Shown piece by piece: positions 6,480-24,105 of a DNA stretch of 64,000 nt. Numbering within the stretch: position 1 is the first letter of the stretch; each line of letters starts with the position of its first letter. The stretch comes from Mytilus californianus (Eukaryota): positions 112,282,001-112,346,000 of the forward strand of contig NW_026262690.1 of assembly GCF_021869535.1 (NCBI RefSeq), written 5' to 3'. Under the pieces are notes generated by a model, which was not told the origin of the DNA, searched no databases, and worked only from the letters and a program-made list of their open reading frames with translations. The position numbers and the translations under genes were made by a program.

Positions 6480-6950
6480 AAATCTGTCTGGACAGAGCCC
6501 TATCATATTAAGTCCCAAAGAACTTTTTTAGGGAGAATGATTTACAAGAATGGTACAGATATTTTTGGTTGTTTGCGCTAAGTTGTTTTAGAAGATCAGA
6601 AATATATTAATAAAAACAAATGATTGAAAAAAGAGAAAATAATTCAAGCAGAAAAAATAGCATCTACTGTATCAGCAAAAAGTAGAAAAAACAAGCTAGA
6701 ACAAGTCTAGAAGACGCTGTAAAAATCTTAAAAAACGTTATGTTCTCAGATAAAATCAAGATGTACGATCTTCCCGACATTGACAATTTTAAATGCAAAG
6801 ATAAAATCTTGAAAATCCGCCCTATATTGTGGAATTTTCTTTTCAGAATTGGTTCCACTGATAACGAAGAGAAAGTACTTCAGAAGTCAGAATGTACTTG
6901 GAATTCACATTATTCTGAACATCCTTTCAATATTTTCAGAATGATGTCAC
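6480..6950 (+). mobile_element. Left part of unit 1 of the decayed FEN1/XPG-motif element, interrupted by the Gypsy insertion
   Basis: Homologous to 21354-21570 and 21687-22030. The sequence resumes at 17535 after the TSD. Confidence 0.85.
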
Positions 6951-7195
6951 TGATGTATATTTAAGCGTACTTACCAATATTGCTGTGATAGTCAGGCTCG
7001 AGGTTCAGGTTTAAGTGGAAACACTAACTAATCTTATTATTGCACTCTGATTCTCTCTTGGCACTTGTCTGCTACTTGTCAATCACACGAGGTAGATCCA
7101 TCCGCACACACACACTTCTAGTCTATTCTCGTCCCTGGTTCTCTCTATGTCCGTCCTGGTCATGTCATACCGTAAGAGTTACCTAACTTACTACA
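6951..7195 (-). repeat. 3' LTR (245 bp)
   Basis: Differs from 17288-17534 by about 2 substitutions plus a small change at a CA microsatellite. On the minus strand it starts TGTAG and ends CATCA. Confidence 0.97.
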
Positions 7196-7209
7196 CCCTC
7201 CCCCCTTTT
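7196..7209 (-). promoter_or_regulatory. Polypurine tract
   Basis: AAAAGGGGGGAGGG immediately before the TG of the 3' LTR. Confidence 0.92.
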
Positions 7210-7863
7210 AAAAGACGAAGGGACGCCCCTGTAGCGTTTTTCTTTTTAAAACAGAATTCCTATATGAACACTATGAGCACTAGAGCTTTCTCCTAGAAAT
7301 AAACTTATTCTTCTATTTATCGCATTAAACTGAAACGGATAAAAAAAAATTGCAACACAAAGAAATTTATTTTCCCCATGCCAAATACCTAACATTTCTG
7401 CATTTCAACGTTATTCTTAACAAAAACATATATACATTTCGTCCTTTGCTCATTTCGCACTGAGCATGGATTAATTAGCGTTAACTTTGTCAGCTGTGAA
7501 AACGGGGGGCCCGTGTAAACGGGTACATTGCACAAACTAACTTCACTTAACGAATACGATTCACTTTCCATCACTGTACACATTAAAAATTCTGTCAATC
7601 ACTGAATATCCATTAAGTTGCTTGATTGTCCATAAACTCAATATTTCATAAACATCACATTTCACATACTATAACACGGTCTCAAGGCAAATAAAAATAA
7701 TTCCCCTCCTCACATTGTATTGTCCTATACATGTGAACTATTTACATATAATCACTATTGGTTTCCGCTCGGACTGTTCACTTTTACTATATCTGTTTAG
7801 TCCACTGAATATTACACAAACAGGATAATCCAATTAACATATTTACAAATTATATTCATACAG

Positions 7864-9866
7864 CTATTTAAAAATTTCCATAGCATTGCCTAAGGTTGCT
7901 GATGCTATTGTCTGGAGGTCAACATACCTCAGTGTTGCTAATTTCTCAACCACTTCTCCAACATATATCGGGGTGTTTATTCGTATTCCCCTCGGTGGCA
8001 TGTACGGTGCATCAGTTTCTGCCAGTAGTCTGTTGACAGGGATGTAACGAAGAGCCTGAATCTGTTGTTGGTTGAATTTTTGTTATGAGGTGTGTAAATC
8101 CAAAACATGTGTTTCTAAAATTAGAAAGCCATGAAGTTATTGTCTCTTTATCGCTCGTTAAACAGTGTAATATAAAAATTTGATCCGGATGACAACGGTG
8201 TTTAAAAATTTGTAAAGCTTTGAAATACAGGTTTTTCGAATATACATCTTCTCTATTGCTTCTAATATGTAAAATAAGTGGAATGTTGGTTTAATCCATT
8301 CGGTTATTTCTTTTAAAAATTGTTCTTGTCTATCTAAATTTGCCCTGCCAGGATTCATGCTGCTGTCCAGCCCCACCTCACCTACTGCCGAAACACGCGA
8401 GTAGGTCACATATTCATAAAATCTACCTACAGCCTGTGGTGATGCTTCATATATTTTCTTGGGGTGAAGTCCAATAGCCACTTTCCATTTTGAATCAAAC
8501 GGAACTGTCTCCGGATATGTTTCTGGGTCACAAAATATTAAAAGGCCACCCTTTATATATACTGGCACTACTGGTGGTCTCTCCATTTGCTCTCCAAGCC
8601 AACGCTCTATGGTAATAGCGGTCGGATTACCAGATATTCTTGTACTGGCACGAGTCAAAAACATCAAGCACACTCCTCTTCTGTACCTGTGGTTCACTGG
8701 AGTGCTCCTGTTTAGACCTTTTAACAGGGATTACTCTTTTACGTACCACTATTCTTTTGTCGGACTCTACCAGTGTACCCTCTACTGTCGGTGGTTCTAT
8801 TTCATTCGTTTCTTCATCCATGTCAACACTCAATTCCTCTCTCATGGCAAGCACTCGAGCAATGAGTGAGTATGTCTTGGCATATTCCAGTGGCGATTTT
8901 TCCAAGTTGTCGGTATTAGTCATGAAATCCAACCCAAAACACATATACGTTGATAGTTGTTCATTCAGCAAATACTGACTGAACAAAACCTGGTATCTCC
9001 AATGAACTAATACACAAGGAGACACTATAGGCAGAAGAGTATACCTGTCTGGTTTGCGCCATTTTAGCTCCTCACAAAGCCCTTCCATCTGGATCCTTGC
9101 ATTAGACAGGATCTCACTTCTTCTAGGTATCTGTCTGGCAATGTTGTTATTTGCCCATCTTATAAGCTCAGTCATAGAACTGTGTCCAGTCAGACACTCA
9201 CTTAAATACTGTAGAATATTACCCCTCAGTTGATCTTTCTTGCCTCACTGGTGGCTGTGGATTGTCCCACATGATGCGCGGCAGGTGGATGTGCTGCACA
9301 TGAAACTTGAGTTTTCTCCCCACAAAATCGCACCTCTAAAATGGACATGGTGAGTTACGAGGATCATCCTTCTTTTCTTCAACTTGTTGTAAATGCAAAC
9401 TACCTTCTGATATTTCTTCATATACCGAGTTGTTATTGTCATTCCTCGAGCTGTCATCCCAGTCGCTATCACTCTCAATCGCCTCCAGCTTGAATGCTCT
9501 TCTTACTTCCATATTCTCTGTCATCTTTGGAAACCAACGAGGTTCTGTTGTTTCAGATTCTAATGACTCAATATTCTCACAATGAGACAGTACATTTCTA
9601 ATATTGGTCAAGTCTTCCTTAACAATGCATGTACGCTCCTTTTGTGTGATCTGTTCGTACGTCCATTTTGGTAATTTAGATGGTAAATCTGACTTGGGAA
9701 TCTGTTCCTTCACCACAATGTCCCCAGTGGTTTCATCATAGCCAATATGAGGATTATCCTCAAACTCGTCCATATCCGCCACAGAATCTGTCCCGATGCT
9801 CTCTGCATCTAATAATGTGTCTTCTGAACTTGAAATGTCCTCAAAAAGCAATTTCCGCCCTATCAC
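7864..9866 (-). pseudogene. TatD: Accessory ORF3: acidic N-terminus, C2H2-like segment and C-terminal TatD-family nuclease domain; disrupted by one stop and about 4 frameshifts
   Basis: Joining frames gives VAIGLHP, AVGEVGLD, IPLILHIR, ILHCLTS, IPVNRLLAETDAPY, NTPIYVGEVVEKLATLR and ATLGNAMEIFK-stop (7864). This is the TatD motif series in the correct order. Confidence 0.9.
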
Positions 9867-9927
9867 TGTCCATTCTGACCAACCACGAGTGCTCTAAAAG
9901 ACCGTCCACACGGTAAAGCACTAATAC

Positions 9928-10040
9928 ACTATGAAGTTATATATATACACGAAACGGAAAATTAAACTCGCAAAACCGCACAAACACTATTCAGTTATAT
10001 ATATACACAATACGCAAAATTAAACTCGCAAAACCGCACC
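9928..10040. repeat. Two ~58-bp direct repeats between integrase and ORF3
   Basis: 'cactat..agttatatatatacac..aaaattaaactcgcaaaaccgcac' occurs twice. Confidence 0.85.
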
Positions 10041-10151
10041 AATATGTACACTAAATGTCAATTATATGTCTATGTCTACAAAGTCAAAACTGCATAAATC
10101 CTGAAACATAAAGAAAACACTCATTATAACACATATTTTTGCCTATATACA

Positions 10152-10167
10152 CTTTCCCCCTTTTTTT
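10152..10167 (-). promoter_or_regulatory. Internal PPT-like tract
   Basis: AAAAAAAGGGGGAAAG followed by TGTA, 8 nt after the integrase stop. It mimics the terminal PPT/LTR junction. Confidence 0.6.
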
Positions 10168-10174
10168 CGGTATA

Positions 10175-11731
10175 TTACACGTTGTTCGGAGTTTGACATT
10201 TCGGACAGTGATACGTCGCGAAAGTCTCGGCTAATTCCGGAGTCACATTTACGCATGTCCCATGATACCATTCATCGCACATATCGCATTGAATCATGAA
10301 CACTCCTTGATCACCTTTCCTACACATGCAATACATATCTCCCATATCCGGTAATATATTCTCACCATCCTTTAACTGATTTTGAACTCTCTTTAGCCAG
10401 GCTGGAATATTACGATCATTACACTTTTTTATTCGGTCGTGATTTATCACGAATACTGTCTTTTCTAGTTTAACTTTATATACATACGATGTTATTTTCT
10501 CTGCAATTATACCTTGTCCTTTCCACGGTGGGTCTAGTTTTTTACTACGCCCTTTGACCTGTGCCGTGTCTAGTATATATACCAAGTCACCTGGCGCGTA
10601 TTCAGTTTTCCTCATCTTGATATCATAGTCTCTTTTCATGTATTCCTGAGAAGTTCTTAACTTTTCTCGTGCAATTTCATGCGCTTGTCGGATTGTTTCT
10701 ACCAACCGACTCACATATTCCTCTTCGCTCTCATCACTCTCTTGACTTGGCGGTCGAAAAACTAAATCTGTAGGCAAGTTTATTTCCCTCCCCAGCATCA
10801 TTTTATTGGGAGTCTGTCCTGTCATTCTATTTTCTGACGAACGAATGGCACTTGCGAGTTGTGGGAGATATTCGTCCCAATCTTTTTGTGATTTGCTCAC
10901 AAAGCATCTGACTGTGTCCATTAAAGTCCTATTATACCTTTCAACCTGACCATTTGCAGACGGTCTATACGCAGTGGTTCTTGTTTTATGTATTTGAAGA
11001 GTTTTACAAACGGATTTAAACAGGTTACTTTCAAAGTTTCTCCCTTGATCACTATGAATCGAGAATGGACATCCAAATCGTGTAAAAAACTCATTCACTG
11101 CTGCCCTTGCTGTGTCTTCAGCGGTTTGCGATGGTAAAGGTATAATTTCTACCCATTTGGTAAATTGGTCTACCATTACTAATATATTTGTATTTCCCTG
11201 TGTTGTTTCGGGTAATGGTCCTAAAAAATCTATGTGAACTCGCTCCATCGGTACTCCTGAATGATACTGTGTCAAAGGACATCTTGCTTTTCTAGTTGCC
11301 TTTTTGTTCTTGTTACAGACATTACATGATCGGACATAATTTTTAATCGTGTTCCCCATTTTGTACCAATACAATTTCTGTTTGACCCTAGCTGTTGTTC
11401 TGTCAATACCTTGATGTTCAGTTATTGGGAGATCATGGTTTAAACTCAACAACTCCGGTATATATGTCGTTGGTACAACTAATCGCACTTGATTATTTTT
11501 CGACCTATTGAAAAGTACTGACCTATCTAAAAAGAACTGTTCTTTATTCACTAAGTACTTCTTTGCTGCCGGTCCTGCAATATATACTTTGTTATCCGGT
11601 GGCTCCTCGTTCCTCTGTAACCAGTGCAATATCAACTGCAAATCAGGATCCTTGGCTTGTTCAGATGACAACTGGTCAGTTGTATACTGAATTCCAAATT
11701 CACTCTCTTCATTTACAGATGCAGATTTCAC
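10175..11731 (-). CDS. pol: Gypsy integrase with C-terminal PHD finger (pol 3' part, separated by a 1-nt frameshift)
   Basis: HHCC (HDLPITEHQG..CNVC), DDE (VHIDFLGP, HSDQGRNFES, NGQVERYN), GPY/F-like PPWKGQG, then C4HC3 YCMC..CDMCDEWYHGTC..HCPKC. Confidence 0.95.
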   Translation of the reverse strand: MKSASVNEESEFGIQYTTDQLSSEQAKDPDLQLILHWLQRNEEPPDNKVYIAGPAAKKYLVNKEQFFLDRSVLFNRSKNNQVRLVVPTTYIPELLSLNHDLPITEHQGIDRTTARVKQKLYWYKMGNTIKNYVRSCNVCNKNKKATRKARCPLTQYHSGVPMERVHIDFLGPLPETTQGNTNILVMVDQFTKWVEIIPLPSQTAEDTARAAVNEFFTRFGCPFSIHSDQGRNFESNLFKSVCKTLQIHKTRTTAYRPSANGQVERYNRTLMDTVRCFVSKSQKDWDEYLPQLASAIRSSENRMTGQTPNKMMLGREINLPTDLVFRPPSQESDESEEEYVSRLVETIRQAHEIAREKLRTSQEYMKRDYDIKMRKTEYAPGDLVYILDTAQVKGRSKKLDPPWKGQGIIAEKITSYVYKVKLEKTVFVINHDRIKKCNDRNIPAWLKRVQNQLKDGENILPDMGDMYCMCRKGDQGVFMIQCDMCDEWYHGTCVNVTPELAETFATYHCPKCQTPNNV

Positions 11732-14709
11732 TACACTCTATCCACGGATACATTTGATCCATTGCACTCGACAGCTACTTTTACTGCTGGCGCTACAGCT
11801 TCCTGTGTTCGAACAGAGCAACCACTGGAGTCGTTTTTTACTTCTGAACTATTTACCTTATTTGGGACCGCAGCTAACGGTATCACATTATCAATTGTCA
11901 TGAAATCCTTCCAACTCTCATGAACCCTAACACAATACTTACATCCACCACATGGTAAAGATTCTGGATTCACCAAAATCGACATCTCAGGGCAAGGTTT
12001 TACAACATTGAGTCGAGACAAAGCATCCGCGTTAACGTGTTGTCTTCCTGGGCGATGTTGGATTTTCATATGATATTGGCTTAAAACTTTAAGCCAACGC
12101 GCTAGTTGCCCTTGTGGCTCTTTAAAACTGATTAGCCACTGTAAACTACTGTGATCTGATCTAACAATGAATTCACGACTTAACAAATAGTGTCTGAAAT
12201 GTTGTGTGAATCTTACTACTGCTAACAATTCTTTTCGTGTTGTGCAATATCTACGCTGTGCAGGTGACAATGTGAAGCTTCCATAGGCAATAACCCGTTC
12301 AATACCATCTTGCACTTGCAATAACTCAGCTCCTATGGCCATGTCAGAGGCATCAGTATTCAAAATGAACTTGTCAGTTGAGTTTGGTAACGTTAACAGT
12401 GGTGTGGTTTGTAACGCACTTTTCAACGCGTCATACGCCTCTTGTTGATTTTTCTCCCATCTAAACGGTTTTTTCCCTGTTATCTCTGTCAATGGTTTGG
12501 CCATTTTGGAGTACCCTTTGATAAAATTCCGATGGTAATTGACAAAACCTAGAAACTGCTCTTCCGTGTTACTCGGTTTTTTCCAATTTTTTATCACTTG
12601 CACATACTCTTCACCAATTGCCATTCCTTGTTGGTTTACTGTTCTACCTAAAAGACTTACTTCTCTTTTGCACAAATCACATTTTCGTGGTTTTAACTTT
12701 ATTCCGTATTCACGGAAGCGTTCAAACACAGCTCTTAAATTTTCGATGTGATCATTGAAGTTTCTCTCCATGACAAGAATATCGTCCAAAAAACACAGTA
12801 CAATTTGCCAAGTAAGACCCCGCAATACTAAGTCCATAGCACGTGCAAACGTGAATGGAGCATTGCATAGCCCGAAACTCATACGCGTGAACTGAAACAG
12901 CCCGTATTGTGTTATGAAAGCGGTTTTAGGTTGATCTTCCTTTGCCACATTCACCTGCCAATACGCGCTATTTGCGTCCAATTTTGAAAACAACTCATTT
13001 CCGGCGAGTGTATCGAGACATTCCTCTATCAAGGGTAGCGGATACACTTCTTTTTTCGTTACGGAGTTGAGTTTCCTATAATCAATCGCGTATCGAACCT
13101 TACCATCTGATTTTCTTATCAAAACTGGAGCCGACGCCCACTCTGATACACTTGGCTCAATCACGCCCGATTTTAACATTTTGGATAATTGCTGTTTTTC
13201 TTCTTCAACAAACTGCAATGGTGTTCTTCGAATTCGTTGTTTGATAGGTTGTGCTTGTCCCGTGTCGATACCATGTTCTACTCCTCTGAATTTACCTATG
13301 TCAAATTCATCCTTTGAAAATATGTCGGTGTATTCTGACAAAAGCGCCTCTAACTGCTGTCTTTCGTCTTCGGATAAATTCACACTTGAGCTTTCCAATA
13401 ATTGTCTCAATGGAGTAGATAATTCCATCTGTATTCCATCCGTTACTTCTGTTATTTGATTCATCGACACACCGGGTTCAATTTCACTGACCACTTCCGC
13501 CTTGGCTATCACAGAATTTCTCTTAAGTGTATAGTATCTATCACTTGCGTTAACTAAACAAATACTTGGTTGATCCTGATATTTATACAGACATCTTAGA
13601 ATTAAAATTGGCAACTTCTCATTACAAGGTTCAATAATGTAATTATCCAGTTTGTTTTCTAATTTAGCATTACTATGCATAACTGAATGAGGTGGGACGA
13701 CAGTCCTCTTTTTGATTACAACTTTTGATACAACAGGAATACTTTGTTTTGGTCCAGGGGACATTTCTAAAATTTCTCCTATATTGAAAGTGAGCTTTTC
13801 AAGGTCAACAGTCACACCATACGCCACCATAAAGTTTAAGCCCAGTAACATCTCATCTTCAATTGGGGCCACATACACATCTGTTTCATAAAGTTTTGTA
13901 CCAATCCTCAAGCTAACTGGACCCACTACAAAGGTCTTCATTTTCATGCCCCGGCCGGCAGCATGCATAACCGTCTCTCTCAAAGTCGTTGGTTTCTTCT
14001 TGAGCGATTCAAACACTTTATCTGAAATAATAGTGACTTCCGCAGCTGTGTCTACAGCTGCTACCAACGGTGTATCTCCTAATTCTAAGCTCAGTCTCAA
14101 AAGAGACGAGTTACCTAGTAACTGCATGGTAGTGAACGTCCTCTCAGAACCATCAGTAACTGTCTTTTCTACATTGAAATGTCCCACGGGGTTTTCTATG
14201 GTTAGTTCTGTTGCTGGTTGGACCGTGGTTAACGGTATTTTCACCATAGGTCTTTTGTTATCTACCCCTGAGTCTAATTCCTTCTTATCCTGGATAGACA
14301 ACGACACCTTGTCGAACCCCTCTTCCTTTAATAACTTAGCCTTACCTGCACTTTTCGGCTGTATTTGATCTTTTTCCTGTGTATCCTGCTCCTTAATACT
14401 ATTTTCCGTACTTTGTTCCTCTGTACTAGTTTTTTCCATATAATTGCCAACTTTATTTTCAAAATTCTTATTCTCACTTGCGTCACACACATTTTTTCCA
14501 CACACTGTTGTATCGGTGTCAACATTGTTAAATGTTGTTTGGTTTGCTGAAACATCTTTATTTAATTTATCACTCTGAACATCGCTAAATGTTTTTCCTG
14601 TGTCAACGTCGTTAAATGTTGTTTTGTTTAAATTAGCATTTTTATTTTGGCGATTTTTAACAGTGCGGGACGGACCAACGCCTATTTGACCGACCCTTCT
14701 GCGTTTAAA
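11731..14709 (-). CDS. pol: Gypsy Pol: aspartic protease, reverse transcriptase, RNase H
   Basis: AAVDTAAEVTII; IDYRKLN, YPLPLI, FGLCNAP, FLDD; DASDMAIGAELLQ, SDHSSL, NADALSR. The frame stays open upstream of the listed start back to the slippery site. Confidence 0.96.
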   Translation of the reverse strand, partial: FKRRRVGQIGVGPSRTVKNRQNKNANLNKTTFNDVDTGKTFSDVQSDKLNKDVSANQTTFNNVDTDTTVCGKNVCDASENKNFENKVGNYMEKTSTEEQSTENSIKEQDTQEKDQIQPKSAGKAKLLKEEGFDKVSLSIQDKKELDSGVDNKRPMVKIPLTTVQPATELTIENPVGHFNVEKTVTDGSERTFTTMQLLGNSSLLRLSLELGDTPLVAAVDTAAEVTIISDKVFESLKKKPTTLRETVMHAAGRGMKMKTFVVGPVSLRIGTKLYETDVYVAPIEDEMLLGLNFMVAYGVTVDLEKLTFNIGEILEMSPGPKQSIPVVSKVVIKKRTVVPPHSVMHSNAKLENKLDNYIIEPCNEKLPILILRCLYKYQDQPSICLVNASDRYYTLKRNSVIAKAEVVSEIEPGVSMNQITEVTDGIQMELSTPLRQLLESSSVNLSEDERQQLEALLSEYTDIFSKDEFDIGKFRGVEHGIDTGQAQPIKQRIRRTPLQFVEEEKQQLSKMLKSGVIEPSVSEWASAPVLIRKSDGKVRYAIDYRKLNSVTKKEVYPLPLIEECLDTLAGNELFSKLDANSAYWQVNVAKEDQPKTAFITQYGLFQFTRMSFGLCNAPFTFARAMDLVLRGLTWQIVLCFLDDILVMERNFNDHIENLRAVFERFREYGIKLKPRKCDLCKREVSLLGRTVNQQGMAIGEEYVQVIKNWKKPSNTEEQFLGFVNYHRNFIKGYSKMAKPLTEITGKKPFRWEKNQQEAYDALKSALQTTPLLTLPNSTDKFILNTDASDMAIGAELLQVQDGIERVIAYGSFTLSPAQRRYCTTRKELLAVVRFTQHFRHYLLSREFIVRSDHSSLQWLISFKEPQGQLARWLKVLSQYHMKIQHRPGRQHVNADALSRLNVVKPCPEMSILVNPESLPCGGCKYCVRVHESWKDFMTIDNVIPLAAVPNKVNSSEVKNDSSGCSVRTQEAVAPAVKVAVECNGSNVSVDRV

Positions 14710-15785
14710 TCCTGAGTGGGTGTTGCTTTAGCATTAGGACAAAATTTTGCAATATGCCCCAGCTCATGGCAATTGTAGCACTCCCAAGTGGATCTATCTT
14801 TCCTCTGATTTTGTCTTGGTCTGTAATCAGTCCTACCTTGATTAGTATAACCTCTCTTTATTTCGGACATTGTATCTTTCATGGATTCCATTTCATCTTT
14901 CCATTTTCTTTCCATTCCTCTCATTTCGGACTGTACCGCCTGGATGTTTTTATCTACCCGATTTTGCACCTCCCCAATATTTGACTGAATGGTCTTCAAA
15001 TTTCGGTCTACATTTTCAGTCAATCTATCAATGCTGTTCACCAGTTGCTGTTGGGAATCTATTTTGACATTGTTGACCTGGATTACATCCTCACAATTTT
15101 CACTGTTTGGCTCTTGGCTATCCCGTGTAGTACGGGTACGGACATTATTACCAAAAACCGCTTTGTCATTGTACTGTTGCCATTTTATGCGTTCCAGTGC
15201 CTCGTCCACTGACTTTGGTCGAAACGATGCAGCTGTACTTCCTGAATTTTTATCCTCACATCCACGGCACAATTTTGTTATGACCTCACTTGTCATAAAT
15301 TCCTCTGGTAAGTCTCCGAAAGCTTTATCTGCCAAACTGAGTAATCGCTCTGCCCAATCGTCTAAATCTTCTCCTGGTGACTCTCGAGCACTTTGAAACT
15401 GTATGCGGACTGTTTCTGTCAGTTTCCTCAAATTGAATCTTTTCTCCATGCATTTAACAAGTTCAGCATATGAAATGTTCTTATTACGCCTAACGCGCCC
15501 CAGGCAAAATCTTGCTGCATTCCCTGTTACAGCCCAACACAGATGTGCCCGTTTATCTTCTTCGCTTAGTCCTGACATCTCGGCATACATTTCAAACTTC
15601 TCCAAAAACGATACCAAATCATCTCCTGTCTCTGTTCCATCATATTTCAATGATTTCAATGGTGTTGTGGAAGCTTTGTTTGTAACTACTGGTCGTGATG
15701 TATTAGACGGAGTAGTCGGCACCTGTATTTGGCTTGGCTGAGAAAATCCAGCTCCATAACCATATGGCTGGTCCATAGCTGTCAT
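14682..15785 (-). CDS. gag: Gag C-terminal part (capsid-like region, CCHC zinc knuckle)
   Basis: YDGTE..FLEKFEMYAE capsid-like segment and CYNCHELGHIAKFC knuckle (14739-14780). Confidence 0.9.
   Translation of the reverse strand: MTAMDQPYGYGAGFSQPSQIQVPTTPSNTSRPVVTNKASTTPLKSLKYDGTETGDDLVSFLEKFEMYAEMSGLSEEDKRAHLCWAVTGNAARFCLGRVRRNKNISYAELVKCMEKRFNLRKLTETVRIQFQSARESPGEDLDDWAERLLSLADKAFGDLPEEFMTSEVITKLCRGCEDKNSGSTAASFRPKSVDEALERIKWQQYNDKAVFGNNVRTRTTRDSQEPNSENCEDVIQVNNVKIDSQQQLVNSIDRLTENVDRNLKTIQSNIGEVQNRVDKNIQAVQSEMRGMERKWKDEMESMKDTMSEIKRGYTNQGRTDYRPRQNQRKDRSTWECYNCHELGHIAKFCPNAKATPTQDLNAEGSVK
14703..14709 (-). promoter_or_regulatory. Putative -1 ribosomal frameshift heptamer U UUA AAC
   Basis: In gag framing (gaT TTA AAC). 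The pol frame is -1 and overlaps here, and a GC-rich imperfect hairpin begins 6 nt downstream. Confidence 0.8.
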
Positions 15786-16668
15786 GGTTGGAACTGCTGA
15801 ATACTGACTCCTTGGTTGTGTTGTAAATAGGTACAGTAGATATTGGCCTTTGTGTACTCCAGGCTGTATGTGTGCTTGGCATTCTATTCATAGTTGGTCC
15901 TGCATACACATTATTCCTTGCCGGAGCAGAACTAGCTACTATTGGGACCATAAACTTTTGTTGTGGTATAAACTGTGGGTGTGCGACAGGGCGCTTTGTT
16001 GTATGTCCCACTTTAAGTTTTCTCTGTGCAATCTCTATGCTCATCACTTTTGGCTTGAATAACATGGAGTTGTACGGTTTGGTGTCTTGCGCACTCACTT
16101 GAATATTTTCTACACTTGGGTAACTTGGTCCAGGAGCCACCTGCTCTGTCCTTATTAAACTAGTAGGGATTTCGCCCGTTGTCACGGGTTTGTACACATT
16201 CTCAAATTTAATTTTCTTCTCTTTCAATTCTTGCCCCAGATGCATGGGTGGGTATTGAAAACTAAAGTCAGTTGGAGGCAGCAAGGGCTCACTTTTTGGG
16301 ATTATAGTCTGCTGTTCACTCTGTTGTGTGTCCTCCTCCTCCTCGTCGAACTCATCCTGATCCTCCTCAGAAAAAATAGTGCACTTATCATCAAAATCCT
16401 CCAAATTGTCCTCCAAATTATCCTCAACTTGGTCCACAAATTTATAGCCACTTAACGGTGTATAATCTATCAACTCGTGAATTATATCCATACGGATACG
16501 AGGTATCGTCACTAAATTTTCAGGTGTTATATCACCTTGTTTTCTTAAATCCCATATACGGTCTGCGGTTGTATGACCCACGGACGGTATTGACAACAAG
16601 TCATCATACCCACAAAAATTAATGCACACTTTTTCCATATTAACGTGTTCACCTTCTAAATACGACAT
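15703..16668 (-). CDS. gag: Gag N-terminal part with ComEA-like helix-hairpin-helix, then acidic and Pro-rich linker
   Basis: INFCGYDDLLSIPSVGHTTADRIWDLRKQGDITPENLVTIPRI resembles the ComEA pattern INTASAEEL..LPGIGPKKA..II.YR. Overlaps the next gag frame. Confidence 0.75.
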   Translation of the reverse strand: MSYLEGEHVNMEKVCINFCGYDDLLSIPSVGHTTADRIWDLRKQGDITPENLVTIPRIRMDIIHELIDYTPLSGYKFVDQVEDNLEDNLEDFDDKCTIFSEEDQDEFDEEEEDTQQSEQQTIIPKSEPLLPPTDFSFQYPPMHLGQELKEKKIKFENVYKPVTTGEIPTSLIRTEQVAPGPSYPSVENIQVSAQDTKPYNSMLFKPKVMSIEIAQRKLKVGHTTKRPVAHPQFIPQQKFMVPIVASSAPARNNVYAGPTMNRMPSTHTAWSTQRPISTVPIYNTTKESVFSSSNHDSYGPAIWLWSWIFSAKPNTGADYSV

Positions 16669-16819
16669 TGCGAACTGAATTTATTATCCCAAAAACACAC
16701 TAAAAACTCAACACTTGTTTTATTATGCAATCTTTAATAAAATTCACACAATAGTCCTTCACCTGTTCTTGGGTTTGAAAATCTAACAAATTTCACTCAC
16801 TAAAATTTTCAAAGTAAAA

Positions 16820-16975
16820 AAATTGTTCTCTGAACACTTGTTTAAAAAAATTGTAAATTGTTCTCTGAACACTTGTTTTTTTCAAATTAATAAATTGTTC
16901 ACAACACACACTTGTTTATACCAAAAGAAAAATTTATTTAATTTTTTACTAAATTGTTCTCTGAACACTTGTTTC
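16820..16975. repeat. Four copies of a ~24-bp motif in the Gypsy 5' UTR
   Basis: 'aaattgttctctgaacacttgttt' at about 16820, 16855, 16892 (diverged) and 16951. Confidence 0.85.
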
Positions 16976-17267
16976 TTTTTTCAAATTATGCCTAATATGA
17001 CCGATTTACCGGTAAAATGGCTAAACTGACCGGAATTTGGCGAAAAGTGGTGAAACGTCTCGGAACTTTTTGAAATTTTTCAAAAACTTTTCAAATTTGC
17101 AAAAAACTACTTACAATTCAGTGAAAATATTATTCCCATTCACATTTATCCTTAAAATTTGAATTTCACACCACAAATCCTTTTACACTGTCATAAACGT
17201 GTATTCCCGTTTTCGAACTACTTTTTTTCTGCACTGTCCCTTTGAATCGCTTTTTTCAACACTTAAA

Positions 17268-17285
17268 CCCAGCGAGCAGCCGCCA
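17268..17285 (-). promoter_or_regulatory. Primer-binding site (tRNA unassigned)
   Basis: TGGCGGCTGCTCGCTGGG starts 2 nt (AA) after the CA of the 5' LTR. Confidence 0.8.
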
Positions 17286-17287
17286 TT

Positions 17288-17534
17288 TGATGTATATTTA
17301 AGCTTACTTACCAATATTGCTGTGATAGTCAGGCTCGAGGTTCAGGTTTAAGTGGAAACACTAACTAATCTTATTATTGCACTCTGATTCTCTCTTGGCA
17401 CTTGTCTGCTACTTGTCGATCACACGAGGTAGATCCATCCGCACACACACACAATTCTAGTCTATTCTCGTCCCTGGTTCTCTCTATGTCCGTCCTGGTC
17501 ATGTCATACCGTAAGAGTTACCTAACTTACTACA
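17288..17534 (-). repeat. 5' LTR (247 bp)
   Basis: Near-identical to 6951-7195. Confidence 0.97.
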
Positions 17535-20500
17535 TCACGTATATACATTCTAAGTTGTATGTTCCATTGACAGAGTTCCCAGTGTGTGAAACCATAACAT
17601 TTATTAATCACAGAAATAGCTGATGAGTTTTCTAATTCATCTAGTACATTTCTTTCTTTTAATGCTAGATTAAGGGCTGGTATCGCAAAGAACTTTCTCA
17701 GAAGATATATTACTAATAGATGTAGAGAATAAGAACAAAAACAGAGGTATCTAGTATCAAGTAGTTCCATTGTAGTCTCATTTGATAACACTGACAAACA
17801 CCCGGCTTTCTCTGTAGGATGTGCTGGATAAGATAGAAGTGAGTTCCATGGAACCACCATTCAGACTGTGGTTCCAAAGCCCAGTCAACAAATTGTTATG
17901 TTTGATGACTACCATACTATTTCACATTTTGTTCAGACCGACGTATCTGAAGTTAAAAATACGAGAGACCGTAAACTGGAAAAAGACATTATTCAAAAAC
18001 TTGTGAACCCAGACATGTATGGATTCCCACCAATAAAAAAAAAAATTTCCTAACCGGTCACCCTCAGATTTAAATGAAACACCTGCAGAAATTTCAAAAT
18101 CGGATGAATTTTATACAAATGTAACAAAGTATGGATTTTTCCAAAAAAAAATTTCAAAAAAGAAAATAGTGTTTTACAAGGTATTAAGACTTTTTTTTCT
18201 ATTCCAGTTGAAACCAGATTAGTGGCCATTTTGGATGAAACAGCAGACAGCAAAGAAACATTATTAAAGGTTTTGAATATTTTAAATGATAAATTTCAAG
18301 TTGGTCAGGTGACTAATTACAATGTATGTTGTTGTTGTAGGTGACGGGAAAAGCTACGATCATTTCAACATTTGATCAAACCTAAATCGGAATATGAGAA
18401 GATCATGGACTGGGTAATTGCCTATCCTGGGGATTGGCATATGGGTCATTTTTACAAATGTCGAATTTTGAAATGCAAAATTGAATTAAAGTTACTTATT
18501 CAAACAACCCTCTTAACAACCAAATCAAAACAAACAGTACTTATGGAACAACTTATAAAAAGATACAATCTTGATAATGTCATACAAGAATATATTCAAA
18601 CATTTTTTGATAGGTGGTGCAAAATGTTGGCTCTTCTGTTACCATGTTCAAAAGAAATTTCGGGTTATTTAGAAAAGGTTTCGATAAAATTTTAAGCTTG
18701 GTTTTTATAGCCAATAGAATGGTTTTCGAGAGTAAAAAATTCTATATATTTTCATTCTGTTTAATGATAGATTATTTGTCAATTTTTCATGTTGTACTGG
18801 AAAATATACCTCTAAAAATTGGTTTTCAAAGGTTATAAAAATAACCACCAGTAATGCAAGTCTAAGATAGTAATTCATAGTGTTCTGCATTTTTTTTTCT
18901 CTTTCTAATAAACCCAACATCAAGTAATTCCCTCGCATTTTAGTTTACTTGTGTCTTCTTTTTTTTGGTTACAGGAACGTACGTTAACGATATAACACCA
19001 TATTAAGTTCTATCCTGTTACCCTTTTTGTCTATCCTGTAACCGATAGGAGTATTGCATTTGTATACATATACTAAAAATGCTTTTCCTATATTTGTCGA
19101 TATTTATTTTGATGCCGGATTGAAGCAGCTTGCTACTAAACATCCCAATGGAACTACGTTAAATGTTTTAACTGAGTGTAGCAAATTTGCAATAACTCAT
19201 AGGTTTTTTATATACAAGCTTGGGGAGCAGTTATGAGACATCAAGTGAAATCTTTTTTTTAATATAAATCATGTGAGGCACCTTATGACATCCAAATTTC
19301 AAATTTAATATTTGATATTATTTCAAATATGTCATTTGATGAGAGAGAAGTTGATGTTTGTAAAACTGATGTCTGGGAGAAGGTATGTGAGAAGAAAAAT
19401 GAGATTTTTACTTTTTTACAGATGAGTTATTGGCAGAGTATAAAACTTGGCGTTATGAGAACTCCTCAGTCAACCAAATATTTACTTTTTGACAATGTCA
19501 TACATTTAGATTTTATGGCTTATCTTGGTTTGTTTTATCTATACGTAGTAGAAACTGGTTATTACGTAATGTGTCTTTGTAAAAATGAACTGTCTATTTC
19601 ATGCTTTTGATGGGAAAATACATAACATAACCTTAACTCAGAATTATAGCTTGAAAGGGAAGAATGTTTACATCAGACAAAAGGTAAAATGCCTTATGTT
19701 AAAAATGCAGAAAAAACCGTTTGTGAATATATATCCAATTTACAAACATCATCTCTGTTTGTCATAAACTATAATGAAACATTACATCATATCTTTACTA
19801 GAACTGAGACTGACAACGAACATACAGACAGCTTGACAAATTACAGACAGTATGGCGAGGATGACTTGGCAAATTAAGTAAAATACTTTTAATTAAAAAG
19901 TTGTGAAACAGCAGGAAAGCCTCCCCCAGAAAAAAAAGAAAAAAAAAGAAAAACCTTTTCCCCTATTGAATTAACTCTTCACAAGAAAAAAAACCCCCAA
20001 AAATCAAAGATCAAACTACAGTGATTTCTTGTTTGAGGAAAAGATTGCATTTTCTAAGCATAGTGGTAACGCAGTCAAGGATTTGGACCAGTTTTTACAG
20101 CTTTTTTATCACAGGTACCTAAAGATTCACTTACAAGTAGAACTACTGTCATTAATGATGGTATGTTTATCACCAATACCAGTCCACTTCCCTCACATAT
20201 GACCTTTGGTGATTATGGTGATTTTCTTTTTAATAGATGGATTGTTAATTATTAGATTCAGTACACAGCAAATTAGGTTCATTTACTATTCGATGATCAA
20301 TATAGGAATGGTGTTAGCCCAAAAGACATTAAAAAAACCAGGAGGAATACAGTCATACAGGAACCAGTTGTACATGTACGTACATGTATTTCCTCCGACA
20401 CACCATTGCTATCAAACTCGCGAAATTTTATTGCAGTTCGCCGTCAAAAGCGAATTTTGGTTAATTTTCTGTCTTAATACTTTTTTTCTTTATCATCGAA

Positions 20501-21686: not shown

Positions 21687-23255
21687 AATCTGTCTGGGCA
21701 GAGCGCTATCATATTTTGTCCCAAAGAACTTTTTTAGGGAGAATGATTTACAGGAATGGTACAGATATTTTTGGTTGTTTGCGCTTAGTTGTTGTAGAAT
21801 ATCAGAAATATATTGATGAAAACAAATGATTGAAAAAAGAGAACATAATTGAAGCAGAAAAAATAGCATCTACTGTATCAGCAGAAAGTAGAAAAAAAAC
21901 CAAACTAGAGCAAAGTCTAGAAGACGCTGTAAAAATCTTAAAAAGTTATGTTAAAATGTATGTCTCAGATAAAATCAAGATGTACAAACTTCCCGACATT
22001 GACAATTTTAAATGCAAAGATCAAATTTTGACGTCCCACCAATAAAAAAACAAAATAAATTTTCTAACCTGTCACCCTCAGATTTAAATGAAACATCTGC
22101 AGAAATTTCAGAATGGGATGAATTTTATACAAATGTAACAAAGTATGTATTTTTCCAAAAAAAAATTTAAAACAAAATAATGTTTTACAAGGTATTAAGA
22201 CTTTTTTCTCTATTCCAGTTGAAATCACTGATTAGTGGCCATTTTGGATGAAACAGCAGACAACAAAGAAACATCATTAAAGGTTTTGAATATTTTAAAT
22301 GATAAATTTCAAGTTGGTCAGGTGACTCATTACAATATATGTTGTTGTTGGTGTGGGTGAAGGGAAAAGCTACGATCATTTGATCAAACCTAAATCGGAA
22401 TATGAGAAAAACATGGACTGGGTACTTGCCTATCCTGGGGATTGGCATATGGGACATTTTTATAAATGTCGAATTTTGAAATGCAAAATTGAATTAAAGT
22501 TACTAATTAAACCAACCCTCTTAACAACCAAATCAAAACAAACAGTACTTATGGAACAACTTATAAAAAGATACAAGCTTGATAATGTCATACAAGAATA
22601 TATTAAAACATTTTTTGATAGGTGGTGCAATATTTTGTCTCTTCTGTTACCATGTTCAAAAGAAATTTCGGGTTATTTAGAAAAGGTTTCGATAAAATTT
22701 TAAGGTTGTTTTTCATAGCCAATAAAATGGTTTTTGAGAGTAAAACATTCTATATATTTTCATTCTGTTTAATGATAGATTATTTGTCAATTTTCCATGT
22801 TGTACTGGAAATTATACATCTAAAAATCTGTTTTCAAAGGTTATAAAAATAACCACCAGTAATGCACGTCTAAGATAGTAATGCATAATGTTCTGCATTG
22901 TTTTCTCTTTCTAATAAATACAGTCAACATCAAGTAATCCCCTCGCATGTTAGTTTACTTTTGTCTTCTTTTTTTTTGTTTTTGTTACAGGAACGTACGT
23001 TAACGATATAACACCATATTACGTTCTATCCTGTTACCCTTTTGGTCTATCATGTTACCGATAGGAGTATTGCATTTATATATATATATATACTAAAAAT
23101 GCTTTTCCTATATTTGTCGATATTTATTTTGATGCCGGATTGAAGCAGCTTCCTACTAAACATCCCCATGGAGCAACATTAAAAGTTTAACTGAGTGTAG
23201 CAAGTTTGCAATAACTCATGGTTTTTTTTATACAAGCTTGGGGAGCAGTTATGAG

Positions 23256-23329
23256 CACAGGCACTTGTCTCAGAAAAATAATTTTCTATATACCTTAGTG
23301 TAACTTTTTTTCTGAGACAAGTGACTGTG
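23256..23329. mobile_element. 74-bp hAT-type MITE
   Basis: 23-bp TIRs (cacaggcacttgtctcagaaaaa, 1 mismatch) and 8-bp TSD GTTATGAG. The paralogous site in unit 1 (about 19229) is empty. Confidence 0.93.
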
Positions 23330-24105
23330 GTTATGAGACATCAAGTGAAATCTTTTTTTGAATATAAATCATGTAAGGCACCTTATGACATCCAAATTTC
23401 AAATTTAATATTTGATATTATTTCAAATATGTCATTTGATGAAGGAGAAGTTGATGGTTGTAAACTTGATGTCTAGAAGATATGTGAGAAACAATGAGTT
23501 ATTGGAAGAGTATAAAACTTGGCGTTATGAGAACTCCTCAGTCAACCAAACTTTTATTTTTTGGGACAATGTCATACATTTAGATTTTAAGGCTTATCTT
23601 GGTTTTTTTTGTATACGTAGTAGAAACTGGTTATTACGTAATGTGTCTTTGAAAAAAGTTACTTGTCTTTTGATGGGAAAAACTATAAGTGACTCTTCAC
23701 CTACCATCTTGCTGATCTCCACACCTTTCCAGAACCTATTATTAAATATTTTGCAACTGGCTACTTTTCAGTTTCAATTTCAAGTAAACATTTGTATTCT
23801 GTAGAACTGGAGGAAGCACACGAAATGGAAATTAATTTAACGTAAAACAAATATCCTCTTAATTCATTCAGCCAGTCTTCTTTAGGAAATCTAACCTTTC
23901 AATTACCTTACAGAACAAAGACATAACATAACCCTTTAATCAGAATTATAGCTTAAAAGGGAAGAAGGTTTACATCAGATAAAAGGAAAAATGTCTTATG
24001 TTTAAAATGCAGAAAAAAACAGTTTGTGAATATATATCCAATTTACAAACATCATCTCTGTTTGTCATAAACTATAATGAAAAACTACATCATATCTTTA
24101 CTAGA

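Follow-up and report, generated by a model that had tools for sequence, protein, structure and literature searches.

A TatD-family nuclease gene as third open reading frame of Ty3/Gypsy retrotransposons in molluscs

The window analyzed here, a stretch of 64,000 nucleotides from the genome of Mytilus californianus, carries at positions 7864-8660 of its minus strand the remains of a TatD-family nuclease domain that is located inside a Ty3/Gypsy retrotransposon. This stretch is the decayed C-terminal TatD domain of a dead element copy, the third open reading frame (ORF3) of which is a pseudogene. ORF3 itself occurs in many families of Gypsy elements, with hundreds of copies in mussels and further ones in other bivalves and in abalone, and we regard it as nearly certain that it constitutes an element-borne, conserved and selected accessory gene. 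As an explanation of the whole, we lean towards a selected, element-borne TatD nuclease that would act on the element's own replication intermediates.

The TatD domain and its conservation

Translation of the minus strand yields the motifs VAIGLHPKK and GEVGLDSS in a first frame (8640-8281), PLILHIRS and FILHCLT in a second frame (8284-8081) and, back in the first frame (8079-7864), the sequence NRLLAETDAPYMPP of the RLLAETDAPY region and, further on, TLGNAMEIFK followed by a stop codon. The three pieces match the Pfam model TatD_DNase (PF01026) in collinear order, at profile positions 55-116 (E 3.4e-8, 33.6 bits), 122-180 (E 1.9e-4, 21.4 bits, below the cut-off of 27 bits) and 183-253 (E 1.5e-15, 57.7 bits). 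The match at 7864-8660 is real and far above chance. The original prediction, derived from the letters of the window, had seen three frameshifted TatD segments here and had proposed a profile search as a check; motifs and profile matches alike agree with it. It had also let these segments join into a TatD domain, which is correct with regard to family and order, while the domain itself is incomplete.

The missing part concerns the active site. Class II TatD proteins, i.e., YcfH, YjjV, TATDN2 and TATDN3, are marked by an HxH motif and class I proteins by G/AxN (Dorival and Eichman, 2023; PMC10085689). Five sister copies of this genome carry 17 nt near 8653 that the window lacks, and the codons for HxH are lost with them, such that the class II motif is found in the family, where it forms part of an invariant or near-invariant DSHFHLDR, and not in the window copy. 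The other metal ligands are kept in the window pieces (GEVGLD, LILHIR, ILHCL and AETDAPY). The same comparison revealed frame breaks near 9848, 9235, 8653, 8285 and 8081, an in-frame stop codon at 9336-9338 and an in-frame gap of 18 nt near 8732.

Among the relatives, the catalytic signature is well preserved. In eight full-length proteins and 58 TatD domains, the motifs D-S-H-x-H-L-D-R, G-E-x-G-L-D, L-H-x-R, L-H-C-F and E-T-D-x-P are invariant or conserved to at least 90%, and the metal ligands outside HxH reach 90-100% conservation in the 58 relatives. The presence of HxH places the ORF3 TatD domain in class II. Intact relatives score 77-146 bits against PF01026, most of them over the whole profile (120-146 bits for full-length matches) and two over its C-terminal four-fifths only. 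When a profile of the family was compared with solved structures, the best values were obtained for YcfH (2e-36), Escherichia coli TatD (3e-29) and YjjV (1e-22), while the human proteins TATDN3 and TATDN1 gave 3.5e-17 and 1e-16, respectively. An AlphaFold (AF2) model of one relative (P0006:355-626) reached a predicted local distance difference test score (pLDDT) of 97, and its top 17 matches in the Protein Data Bank (PDB) are all TatD-family structures with query template modeling (TM) scores of 0.69-0.80. Judged from sequence and model, the ORF3 TatD is a class II, YcfH/TATDN2-like TIM barrel that keeps every metal-binding residue. In a quick maximum-likelihood tree that also held 25 bacterial domains, host TATDN3 and two non-Gypsy TatDs of the same genome, with host TATDN1 and TATDN2 outside the tree, the 58 element domains formed one side of a branch supported by 98% in the Shimodaira-Hasegawa-like approximate likelihood ratio test (SH-aLRT), apart from all other sequences, which is compatible with a single acquisition of the Gypsy TatD.

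The five sister copies are 86-98% identical to the window copy over ORF3, are open across the breaks of the latter and are each broken at different sites. Compared side by side, each as it stands rather than as a consensus or repaired frame, they add up to an uninterrupted ORF3 with a length of roughly 680 codons. In the same genome, at least 149 of 304 candidates matched the Pfam TatD model. The majority of these matches lack introns and extend over the complete profile, and open frames of at least 550 amino acids contain about 20 of them. Eleven of 14 sampled loci are situated directly behind Gypsy pol or integrase-PHD (INT-PHD) sequences on the same strand; the other three consist of the TATDN3 gene of the host (E 1e-85 to human TATDN3), a class II TatD standing alone and a TatD that follows a Helitron.

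With the longest uninterrupted segment of one sister copy as query, full-length relatives of 626-869 amino acids with 26-44% identity were retrieved. Six of eight contexts from other assemblies present gag with helix-hairpin-helix (HhH), PNMA_C and CCHC domains, pol with protease (PR), reverse transcriptase (RT), RNase H (RH), integrase and PHD finger, and then ORF3 with TatD; one consists of INT-PHD followed by ORF3 and one of a solitary ORF3-like gene. Taken over all sampled contexts, the position behind pol is kept in 18 of 22, with ORF3 proteins that are only 25-50% identical. The lineage that bears ORF3 is characterized by a gag with helix-hairpin-helix and an integrase ending in a PHD finger. 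Sister and distant elements retain ORF3 as an intact frame under purifying selection, and the TatD belongs to the element and not to a neighboring or nested gene. The search for such intact copies in relatives and in the same genome, proposed along with the original prediction, had a positive outcome. The statement that TatD is not a standard Ty3/Gypsy domain is likewise supported.

An exhaustive family search among 1.84 billion representatives yielded 1163 matches at E<=1e-10. Among proteins of at least 500 amino acids, taken from the best 150 of the 1163 plus other fetched proteins, 71 of 75 combine an N-terminal domain (N-domain, see below) with a C-terminal TatD. The named hosts, all of them molluscs, comprise the bivalves Mytilus galloprovincialis, M. 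edulis, M. coruscus, Mya arenaria, Dreissena polymorpha and Pinctada imbricata as well as the gastropods Haliotis rubra and H. asinina; further family members stem from unlabelled assemblies. In Dreissena, dozens of near-identical ORF3 copies are spread over several chromosomes.

Codon comparisons were made piecewise, with the frames kept apart. For the window copy against four diverged subfamilies, the ratio of nonsynonymous to synonymous substitution rates (dN/dS) amounts to 0.13-0.20 at dS 0.55-0.87 for both the N-domain and the TatD domain, values biased somewhat low because alignments based on high-scoring segment pairs favor conserved segments. Recent sister copies gave 0.4-0.7 at dS 0.04-0.09, a range to be expected if neutral decay following insertion contributes. 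The conservation of catalytic residues at depth supports purifying selection independently of these ratios. Neutral evolution of ORF3, which had been named as an outcome that would speak against the original prediction, is therefore not what the subfamily comparison indicates.

Members of the family are currently listed as "TATDN2", "YcfH-like hydrolase", "D-aminoacyl-tRNA deacylase-like" or as proteins of bacterial metagenome-assembled genomes (MAGs), and automatic NCBI names include TATDN2, YcfH-like and YabD-like; misnaming of this kind inflates host gene counts and contaminates metagenome bins. A complete gag-pol-ORF3 element resides on a contig binned as a bacterial MAG (L041; GCA_040505915.1, JBEVXV010000655.1), its ORF3 being annotated as "TatD family hydrolase [Sedimenticola sp.]"; this contig most likely is animal host DNA that contaminates the bin. 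At another locus (L038:9001-12162), present on two long contigs, an ORF3-like protein of 1053 amino acids combines N-domain and TatD with a faint additional C2H2 match, and the 9 kb upstream are devoid of pol; the copy could stand alone or have been domesticated. Finally, a "putative deoxyribonuclease TATDN2" has been listed among transposon-like genes in the Hox cluster of the giant squid Architeuthis (PMC6962438). It might be an ORF3 of the mollusc Gypsy kind, in which case the range would reach the cephalopods.

The window element and the architecture of ORF3

The Ty3/Gypsy element that encloses the TatD stretch measures 10,584 bp (6951-17534, minus strand) and displays all hallmarks of this group, i.e., long terminal repeats (LTRs) with TG..CA ends, a target site duplication (TSD), a primer binding site (PBS) and a polypurine tract (PPT). 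The order of gag with CCHC followed by pol with PR-RT-RNaseH-INT is identical in the relatives. The window sequence is free of any N. The features are as follows (all on the minus strand, except for the TSD, which flanks the element):

6947-6950 and 17535-17538: left and right copy of the TSD TCAC, the same four bases outside both LTRs
6951-7195: 3' LTR with TG..CA ends, agreeing with 17288-17534 at 243 of 247 aligned positions (98.4%)
7196-7214: PPT adjoining the 3' LTR, a purine run on the sense strand (A4 G6 A G3)
7215-7863: non-coding 3' region from the ORF3 stop to the PPT, about 650 nt, AT-rich and without long ORF
7864-9873: complete ORF3 pseudogene, start codon at 9873-9871, stop codon at 7866-7864
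7864-8660: class II TatD domain remnant of ORF3 (PF01026), three pieces in two frames, HxH lost
8900-9356: N-domain remnant of ORF3, C2H2-like zinc knuckle CP..C...H....H followed by helices bearing a conserved HWRYQ motif
9874-10174: spacer from the integrase stop to the ORF3 start, about 300 nt, with a pyrimidine tract and AG about 20 nt before the ATG
10175-11731: integrase with H2C2 zinc finger (PF17921, 3e-16) and rve core (PF00665, 4.9e-15)
within 10175-11731: PHD finger at the integrase C-terminus (PF00628, 7.6e-9)
11731-14505: protease-reverse transcriptase-RNase H part of pol (PF13650, PF00078, PF17917/PF17919)
14682-16668: gag region with two overlapping ORFs (15703-16668 and 14682-15785), CCHC knuckle in the latter
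17268-17287: PBS adjoining the 5' LTR, beginning with TGGCGG
17288-17534: 5' LTR, pairing with the LTR at 6951-7195

The TatD stretch lies between integrase and PPT, within LTRs and TSD, exactly as had been claimed. In the window copy, the integrase is split from RNase H by a frame break at 11731-11733, where another copy differs by a single base at 11733, and the gag ORFs overlap at 15703-15785, whereas relatives have one unbroken gag. Because gag and pol are both split, the whole copy is defective despite 98.4% identity of its LTRs.

In the spacer, the segment 9930-10060 holds two direct repeats of about 60 nt each, TATATATACAC and AAAATTAAACTCGCAAAACCGCAC. Contigs from two sequencing runs considered below (X1 and X3) cease to match the window at 9922, just short of these repeats. 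Immediately outside the 5' LTR, several direct repeat families at 18032-19380 and 22046-23480, which are 83-97% identical and regularly spaced by about 4,010 nt, represent a tandem duplication of a unit of about 4 kb.

The original prediction had dealt with the TatD domain of ORF3. A TatD is present, and the complete protein has two domains, with about 400 residues that include a zinc-knuckle/helical domain preceding the TatD. Its layout comprises an acidic tail, a zinc-knuckle/helical domain of about 150 residues (the N-domain), a basic linker and the class II TatD. In the window, the profile of the N-domain matches 8906-9244 and 9231-9386. Alignments of relatives show an invariant C-x4-C...H-x4-H knuckle and a conserved W-R. 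A model of the N-domain reached pLDDT 93.6. Searches with this model, in which residues 1-38 with the zinc knuckle were barely covered, revealed no structural relative in the PDB by Foldseek (best E 1.8), a best Z of 3.1 by VIA-align against 48,161 chains and TM values of 0.31 or less in the ESM Atlas. The N-domain did not give any Pfam match, and neither did four ORFs that contain this domain only. Pfam scans of 12 long ORF3 relatives detected no domain beyond TatD, and a search of a protein-language-model atlas with ORF3 returned no usable match.

The N-domain also occurs apart from TatD, at L047:2263-3753 (-) and L051:5696-7186 (+) and also at L046:228-7586, L048:2014-4890 and L050:5129-7873. 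These occurrences comprise a 497-amino-acid ORF3 one stop codon downstream of Gypsy pol and very long open frames of 2453, 959 and 915 amino acids, none of which has a Pfam match. As far as sequences tell, the N-domain behaves as a movable module, and since it is found with other partners it may serve these elements repeatedly for targeting.

An envelope-like nature of ORF3 was considered as well, given its position. A membrane glycoprotein is rejected, because none of 11 ORF3 proteins has an N-terminal hydrophobic segment or a membrane anchor. The maximum hydropathy over 19 residues is 0.8-1.8 and always falls within folded domains; the proteins start with the acidic tail, and short basic clusters are present in most of them.

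Expression and possible function of ORF3

We propose that the ORF3 protein would be produced from a spliced subgenomic mRNA, as is retroviral env, or by reading on from pol, then traveling with the integrase. It would work as a divalent-metal-dependent 3'-5' exonuclease and apurinic/apyrimidinic (AP) endonuclease on replication intermediates of the element, with cDNA ends, abasic sites, sites of mis-incorporation or, in RNA:DNA hybrids, the RNA strand as possible substrates, and such trimming or repair could lead to more integration-competent cDNA. These activities are taken from the biochemistry of cellular TatD homologues. YcfH, TatD, TATDN1 and TATDN3 are 3'-5' exonucleases on single strands and AP-endonucleases on duplex DNA (PMC10085689), and TATDN2 is described as an RNA 3'-exo- and endonuclease on R-loops and RNA:DNA hybrids (PMC10711561). 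Proofreading, trimming of cDNA ends, resolution of R-loops and countering of host damage, as suggested in the original prediction, likewise derive from the known actions of cellular TatDs and are putative for ORF3. That intact ORF3 copies encode a catalytically active nuclease appears probable. Whether the targets would be the element's own intermediates, as opposed to host molecules, is nearly balanced and leans slightly towards doubt.

With respect to expression, a pyrimidine tract plus (C)AG is enriched within the 45 nt that precede the ORF3 start codon in 17 elements (Mann-Whitney p = 0.005), and in about half of them a pyrimidine tract with CAG lies no more than 25 nt from the ATG. Three of the 17 have at least 12 pyrimidines in 14 positions and an AG 1-3 nt before the ATG, as compared with 0.9% of control ATGs, and several more have 10-11 pyrimidines. 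This is the appearance expected of a 3' splice site for a subgenomic mRNA. Other families link ORF3 to pol. One contains integrase, N-domain and TatD in a single open frame of 1814 amino acids (L034:4375-9816 (+)), and another has an in-frame fusion of INT-PHD with only the N-domain (L049:2728-5715 (-)). In three elements, of which two are copies from the same family, just one in-frame stop codon separates pol from ORF3, and in two elements pol and ORF3 occupy overlapping frames. Where ORF3 is fused to pol or read on from it, the protein would be made within the polyprotein and would travel with the integrase. Motifs and frames together suggest that ORF3 is probably expressed via a spliced subgenomic mRNA and in some families as an extension of pol.

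Contigs from X1 and X3, runs of 197 and 122 million letters from a related organism, cover 7196-9922, with ORF3 and the 3' region joined in single contigs, at depths of 19 and 5-9, respectively, and none covers integrase or reverse transcriptase. As these runs correspond to about 0.1x genomic coverage, such depths cannot stem from genomic DNA. A splice junction at 9922 was considered and rejected. The 30-nt loose end of the X1 and X3 contigs did not match any part of the window when up to three mismatches were allowed, and by eye it resembles a diverged form of the spacer. Logan contigs for P0004 and P0011 were also examined as subgenomic mRNA and set aside; an upstream ORF, probably integrase, reaches the contig edge.

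Several points weigh against a selected nuclease that serves the element's own replication. The label of X1 and X3 as RNA is only guessed, the pol of their source organism could simply be less than 90% alike and therefore be missing from the contigs, and the loose end at 9922, which looks like diverged spacer, was not counted as a junction. The only certain RNA-seq run, X21, gave two reads. The window copy cannot make an ORF3 protein, and the RNase H of pol would render a role of ORF3 on RNA:DNA hybrids partly redundant. The low bias of the dN/dS values and the restricted sampling of the quick TatD tree belong here as well. Lastly, a class II TatD is also present behind a Helitron, which fits a host-directed function shared by unrelated transposons.

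This last point leads to counter-defence as an alternative, which we consider unlikely. ORF3 would act on host-facing molecules, e.g., by clearing surplus or aberrant cytosolic cDNA in a manner comparable to the action of host TREX1 for retroviruses, or would destroy nucleic-acid signals and thereby keep host DNA sensing silent. A Helitron Rep/helicase and OTU ORF in the same genome that is followed, after 650 nt, by a related class II TatD points in this direction, because two transposon classes with unrelated replication chemistry then carry the same type of enzyme; furthermore, TatDs of parasites and bacteria degrade extracellular DNA traps of the host (PMC10085689), and in most families ORF3 is separate and seemingly transcribed apart from pol. 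On the other hand, fusion to or read-on from pol in some families suggests action beside the integrase, ORF3 lacks a signal peptide or membrane segment, and the link to Helitrons is a single locus with few relatives.

The Helitron-linked locus itself (L026:4980-9759, contig C97) contains a class II TatD ORF of 244 amino acids with HxH, about 650 nt downstream of a Helitron-type Rep/helicase, and its Helitron ORF set includes an OTU-like cysteine-protease stretch on the same strand as the TatD ORF. This TatD has few same-genome relatives among the matches listed, one at 85% and the solitary L025 ORF at 37%. Helitrons may thus be a second transposon class that carries a TatD in Mytilus californianus.

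A predominant role in RNA processing is quite unlikely in our estimation. Here, the TatD would mainly be a ribonuclease that trims transcript 3' ends or removes RNA primers or the RNA of hybrids, with an N-domain binding RNA. The domain is of class II with best matches to the YcfH type, TATDN2 has RNA 3'-exo and endonuclease activity on RNA:DNA hybrids (PMC10711561), and retroelement RNA 3'-end processing has likewise been proposed for a DEDDy-type ORF3 of rotifers (PMC5408684). Yet pol already provides RNase H, no similarity of the N-domain to an RNA-binding fold could be detected, and indications of membership in the TATDN2 clade proper are limited to automatic NCBI names on some members.

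That ORF3 is passive cargo, i.e., a host gene fragment captured once or a neighboring or nested gene without any role for the element, is extremely improbable and was rejected. In its favor, the window copy is broken in six places and the host has a TATDN3 gene of its own. Against it, the TatD matches are mostly intronless and behind pol at 11 of 14 loci, the position is the same in 18 of 22 contexts with proteins of 25-50% identity, catalytic residues are invariant, dN/dS is 0.13-0.20 and the element TatDs form a monophyletic clade separate from host TATDN3.

We therefore return to the element-borne nuclease that acts on replication intermediates. In its most specific form, a mollusc-wide Gypsy lineage would carry its own repair or proofreading nuclease, tethered by the zinc knuckle, that cleans products of reverse transcription or undoes host damage to cDNA; this form is tentative, and we rate it as rather doubtful. 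It would, to our knowledge, be the first retroelement-encoded TatD-fold enzyme of the repair or proofreading kind. Accessory genes reveal the problems that a retroelement must solve in its host, and here many Gypsy families have recruited an enzyme family linked to oxidative and AP-site repair and to the removal of R-loops, and have retained it under selection. Through ORF3, cDNA quality control or anti-restriction in retroelements of invertebrates becomes accessible to tests, and the class II TatD/TATDN2 enzymes, which are poorly understood, gain a natural setting for their function; should the proposed role be true, ORF3 would also be a natural system for their action on RNA:DNA intermediates.

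Comparison with known systems

A search of the full-text literature, with Repbase and Dfam outside its scope, did not retrieve any transposon-borne TatD, and a lineage of mollusc Gypsy elements with a TatD ORF3 and a new attached domain was not found described. The nearest precedent is the enzymatic ORF3 of LTR elements from bdelloid rotifers (Juno and Vesta), which encodes a DEDDy-type 3'-5' exonuclease or a GDSL esterase (Rodriguez et al., 2017; PMC5408684). In both cases, the third ORF after pol in a Ty3/Gypsy-like element specifies a soluble hydrolase instead of an envelope protein, catalytic residues are kept, a membrane segment is absent, and the type of enzyme recurs in another transposon class, namely another retroelement class in rotifers and a Helitron here. 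In contrast, the rotifer fold is DnaQ-like DEDDy and that of the mollusc ORF3 a TatD TIM-barrel metallohydrolase, the present hosts are Mollusca, and the present ORF3 is fused to an orphan zinc-knuckle domain. Within their genome, the rotifer ORFs did not depart significantly from neutrality (PMC5408684), while the mollusc ORF3 has the low dN/dS given above.

With cellular class II TatDs such as YcfH and YjjV of E. coli and human TATDN2 and TATDN3, ORF3 shares the Pfam family, the TIM barrel, HxH and the other metal ligands, and TATDN2 resembles it further by a long N-terminal extension, there with nuclear localization signals (PMC10085689). It differs from them in that the gene is transposon-borne, intronless and multicopy, in that its N-terminal extension is a conserved folded domain also found without TatD, and in that it forms a clade of its own apart from host TATDN3 and the sampled bacterial proteins, in a tree that did not include TATDN2.

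The env genes of errantiviruses and other three-ORF Gypsy elements (gypsy, ZAM, Athila, Cer1) have the same location between integrase and PPT, and the acceptor-like motifs make spliced subgenomic expression likely for ORF3, too. Unlike env, ORF3 encodes an enzyme, does not feature a signal peptide, transmembrane segment or traits of a fusion protein, and in some families is fused to pol or read on from it.

A further parallel is provided by dUTPase, which is present in non-primate lentiviruses, betaretroviruses and some Gypsy elements, where protection or repair of cDNA is its likely logic. Like dUTPase, ORF3 represents an extra enzyme of nucleic-acid hygiene on a reverse-transcribing element; unlike dUTPase, it would have DNA or RNA polymers and not the nucleotide pool as its substrate, and in most cases it forms an ORF of its own.

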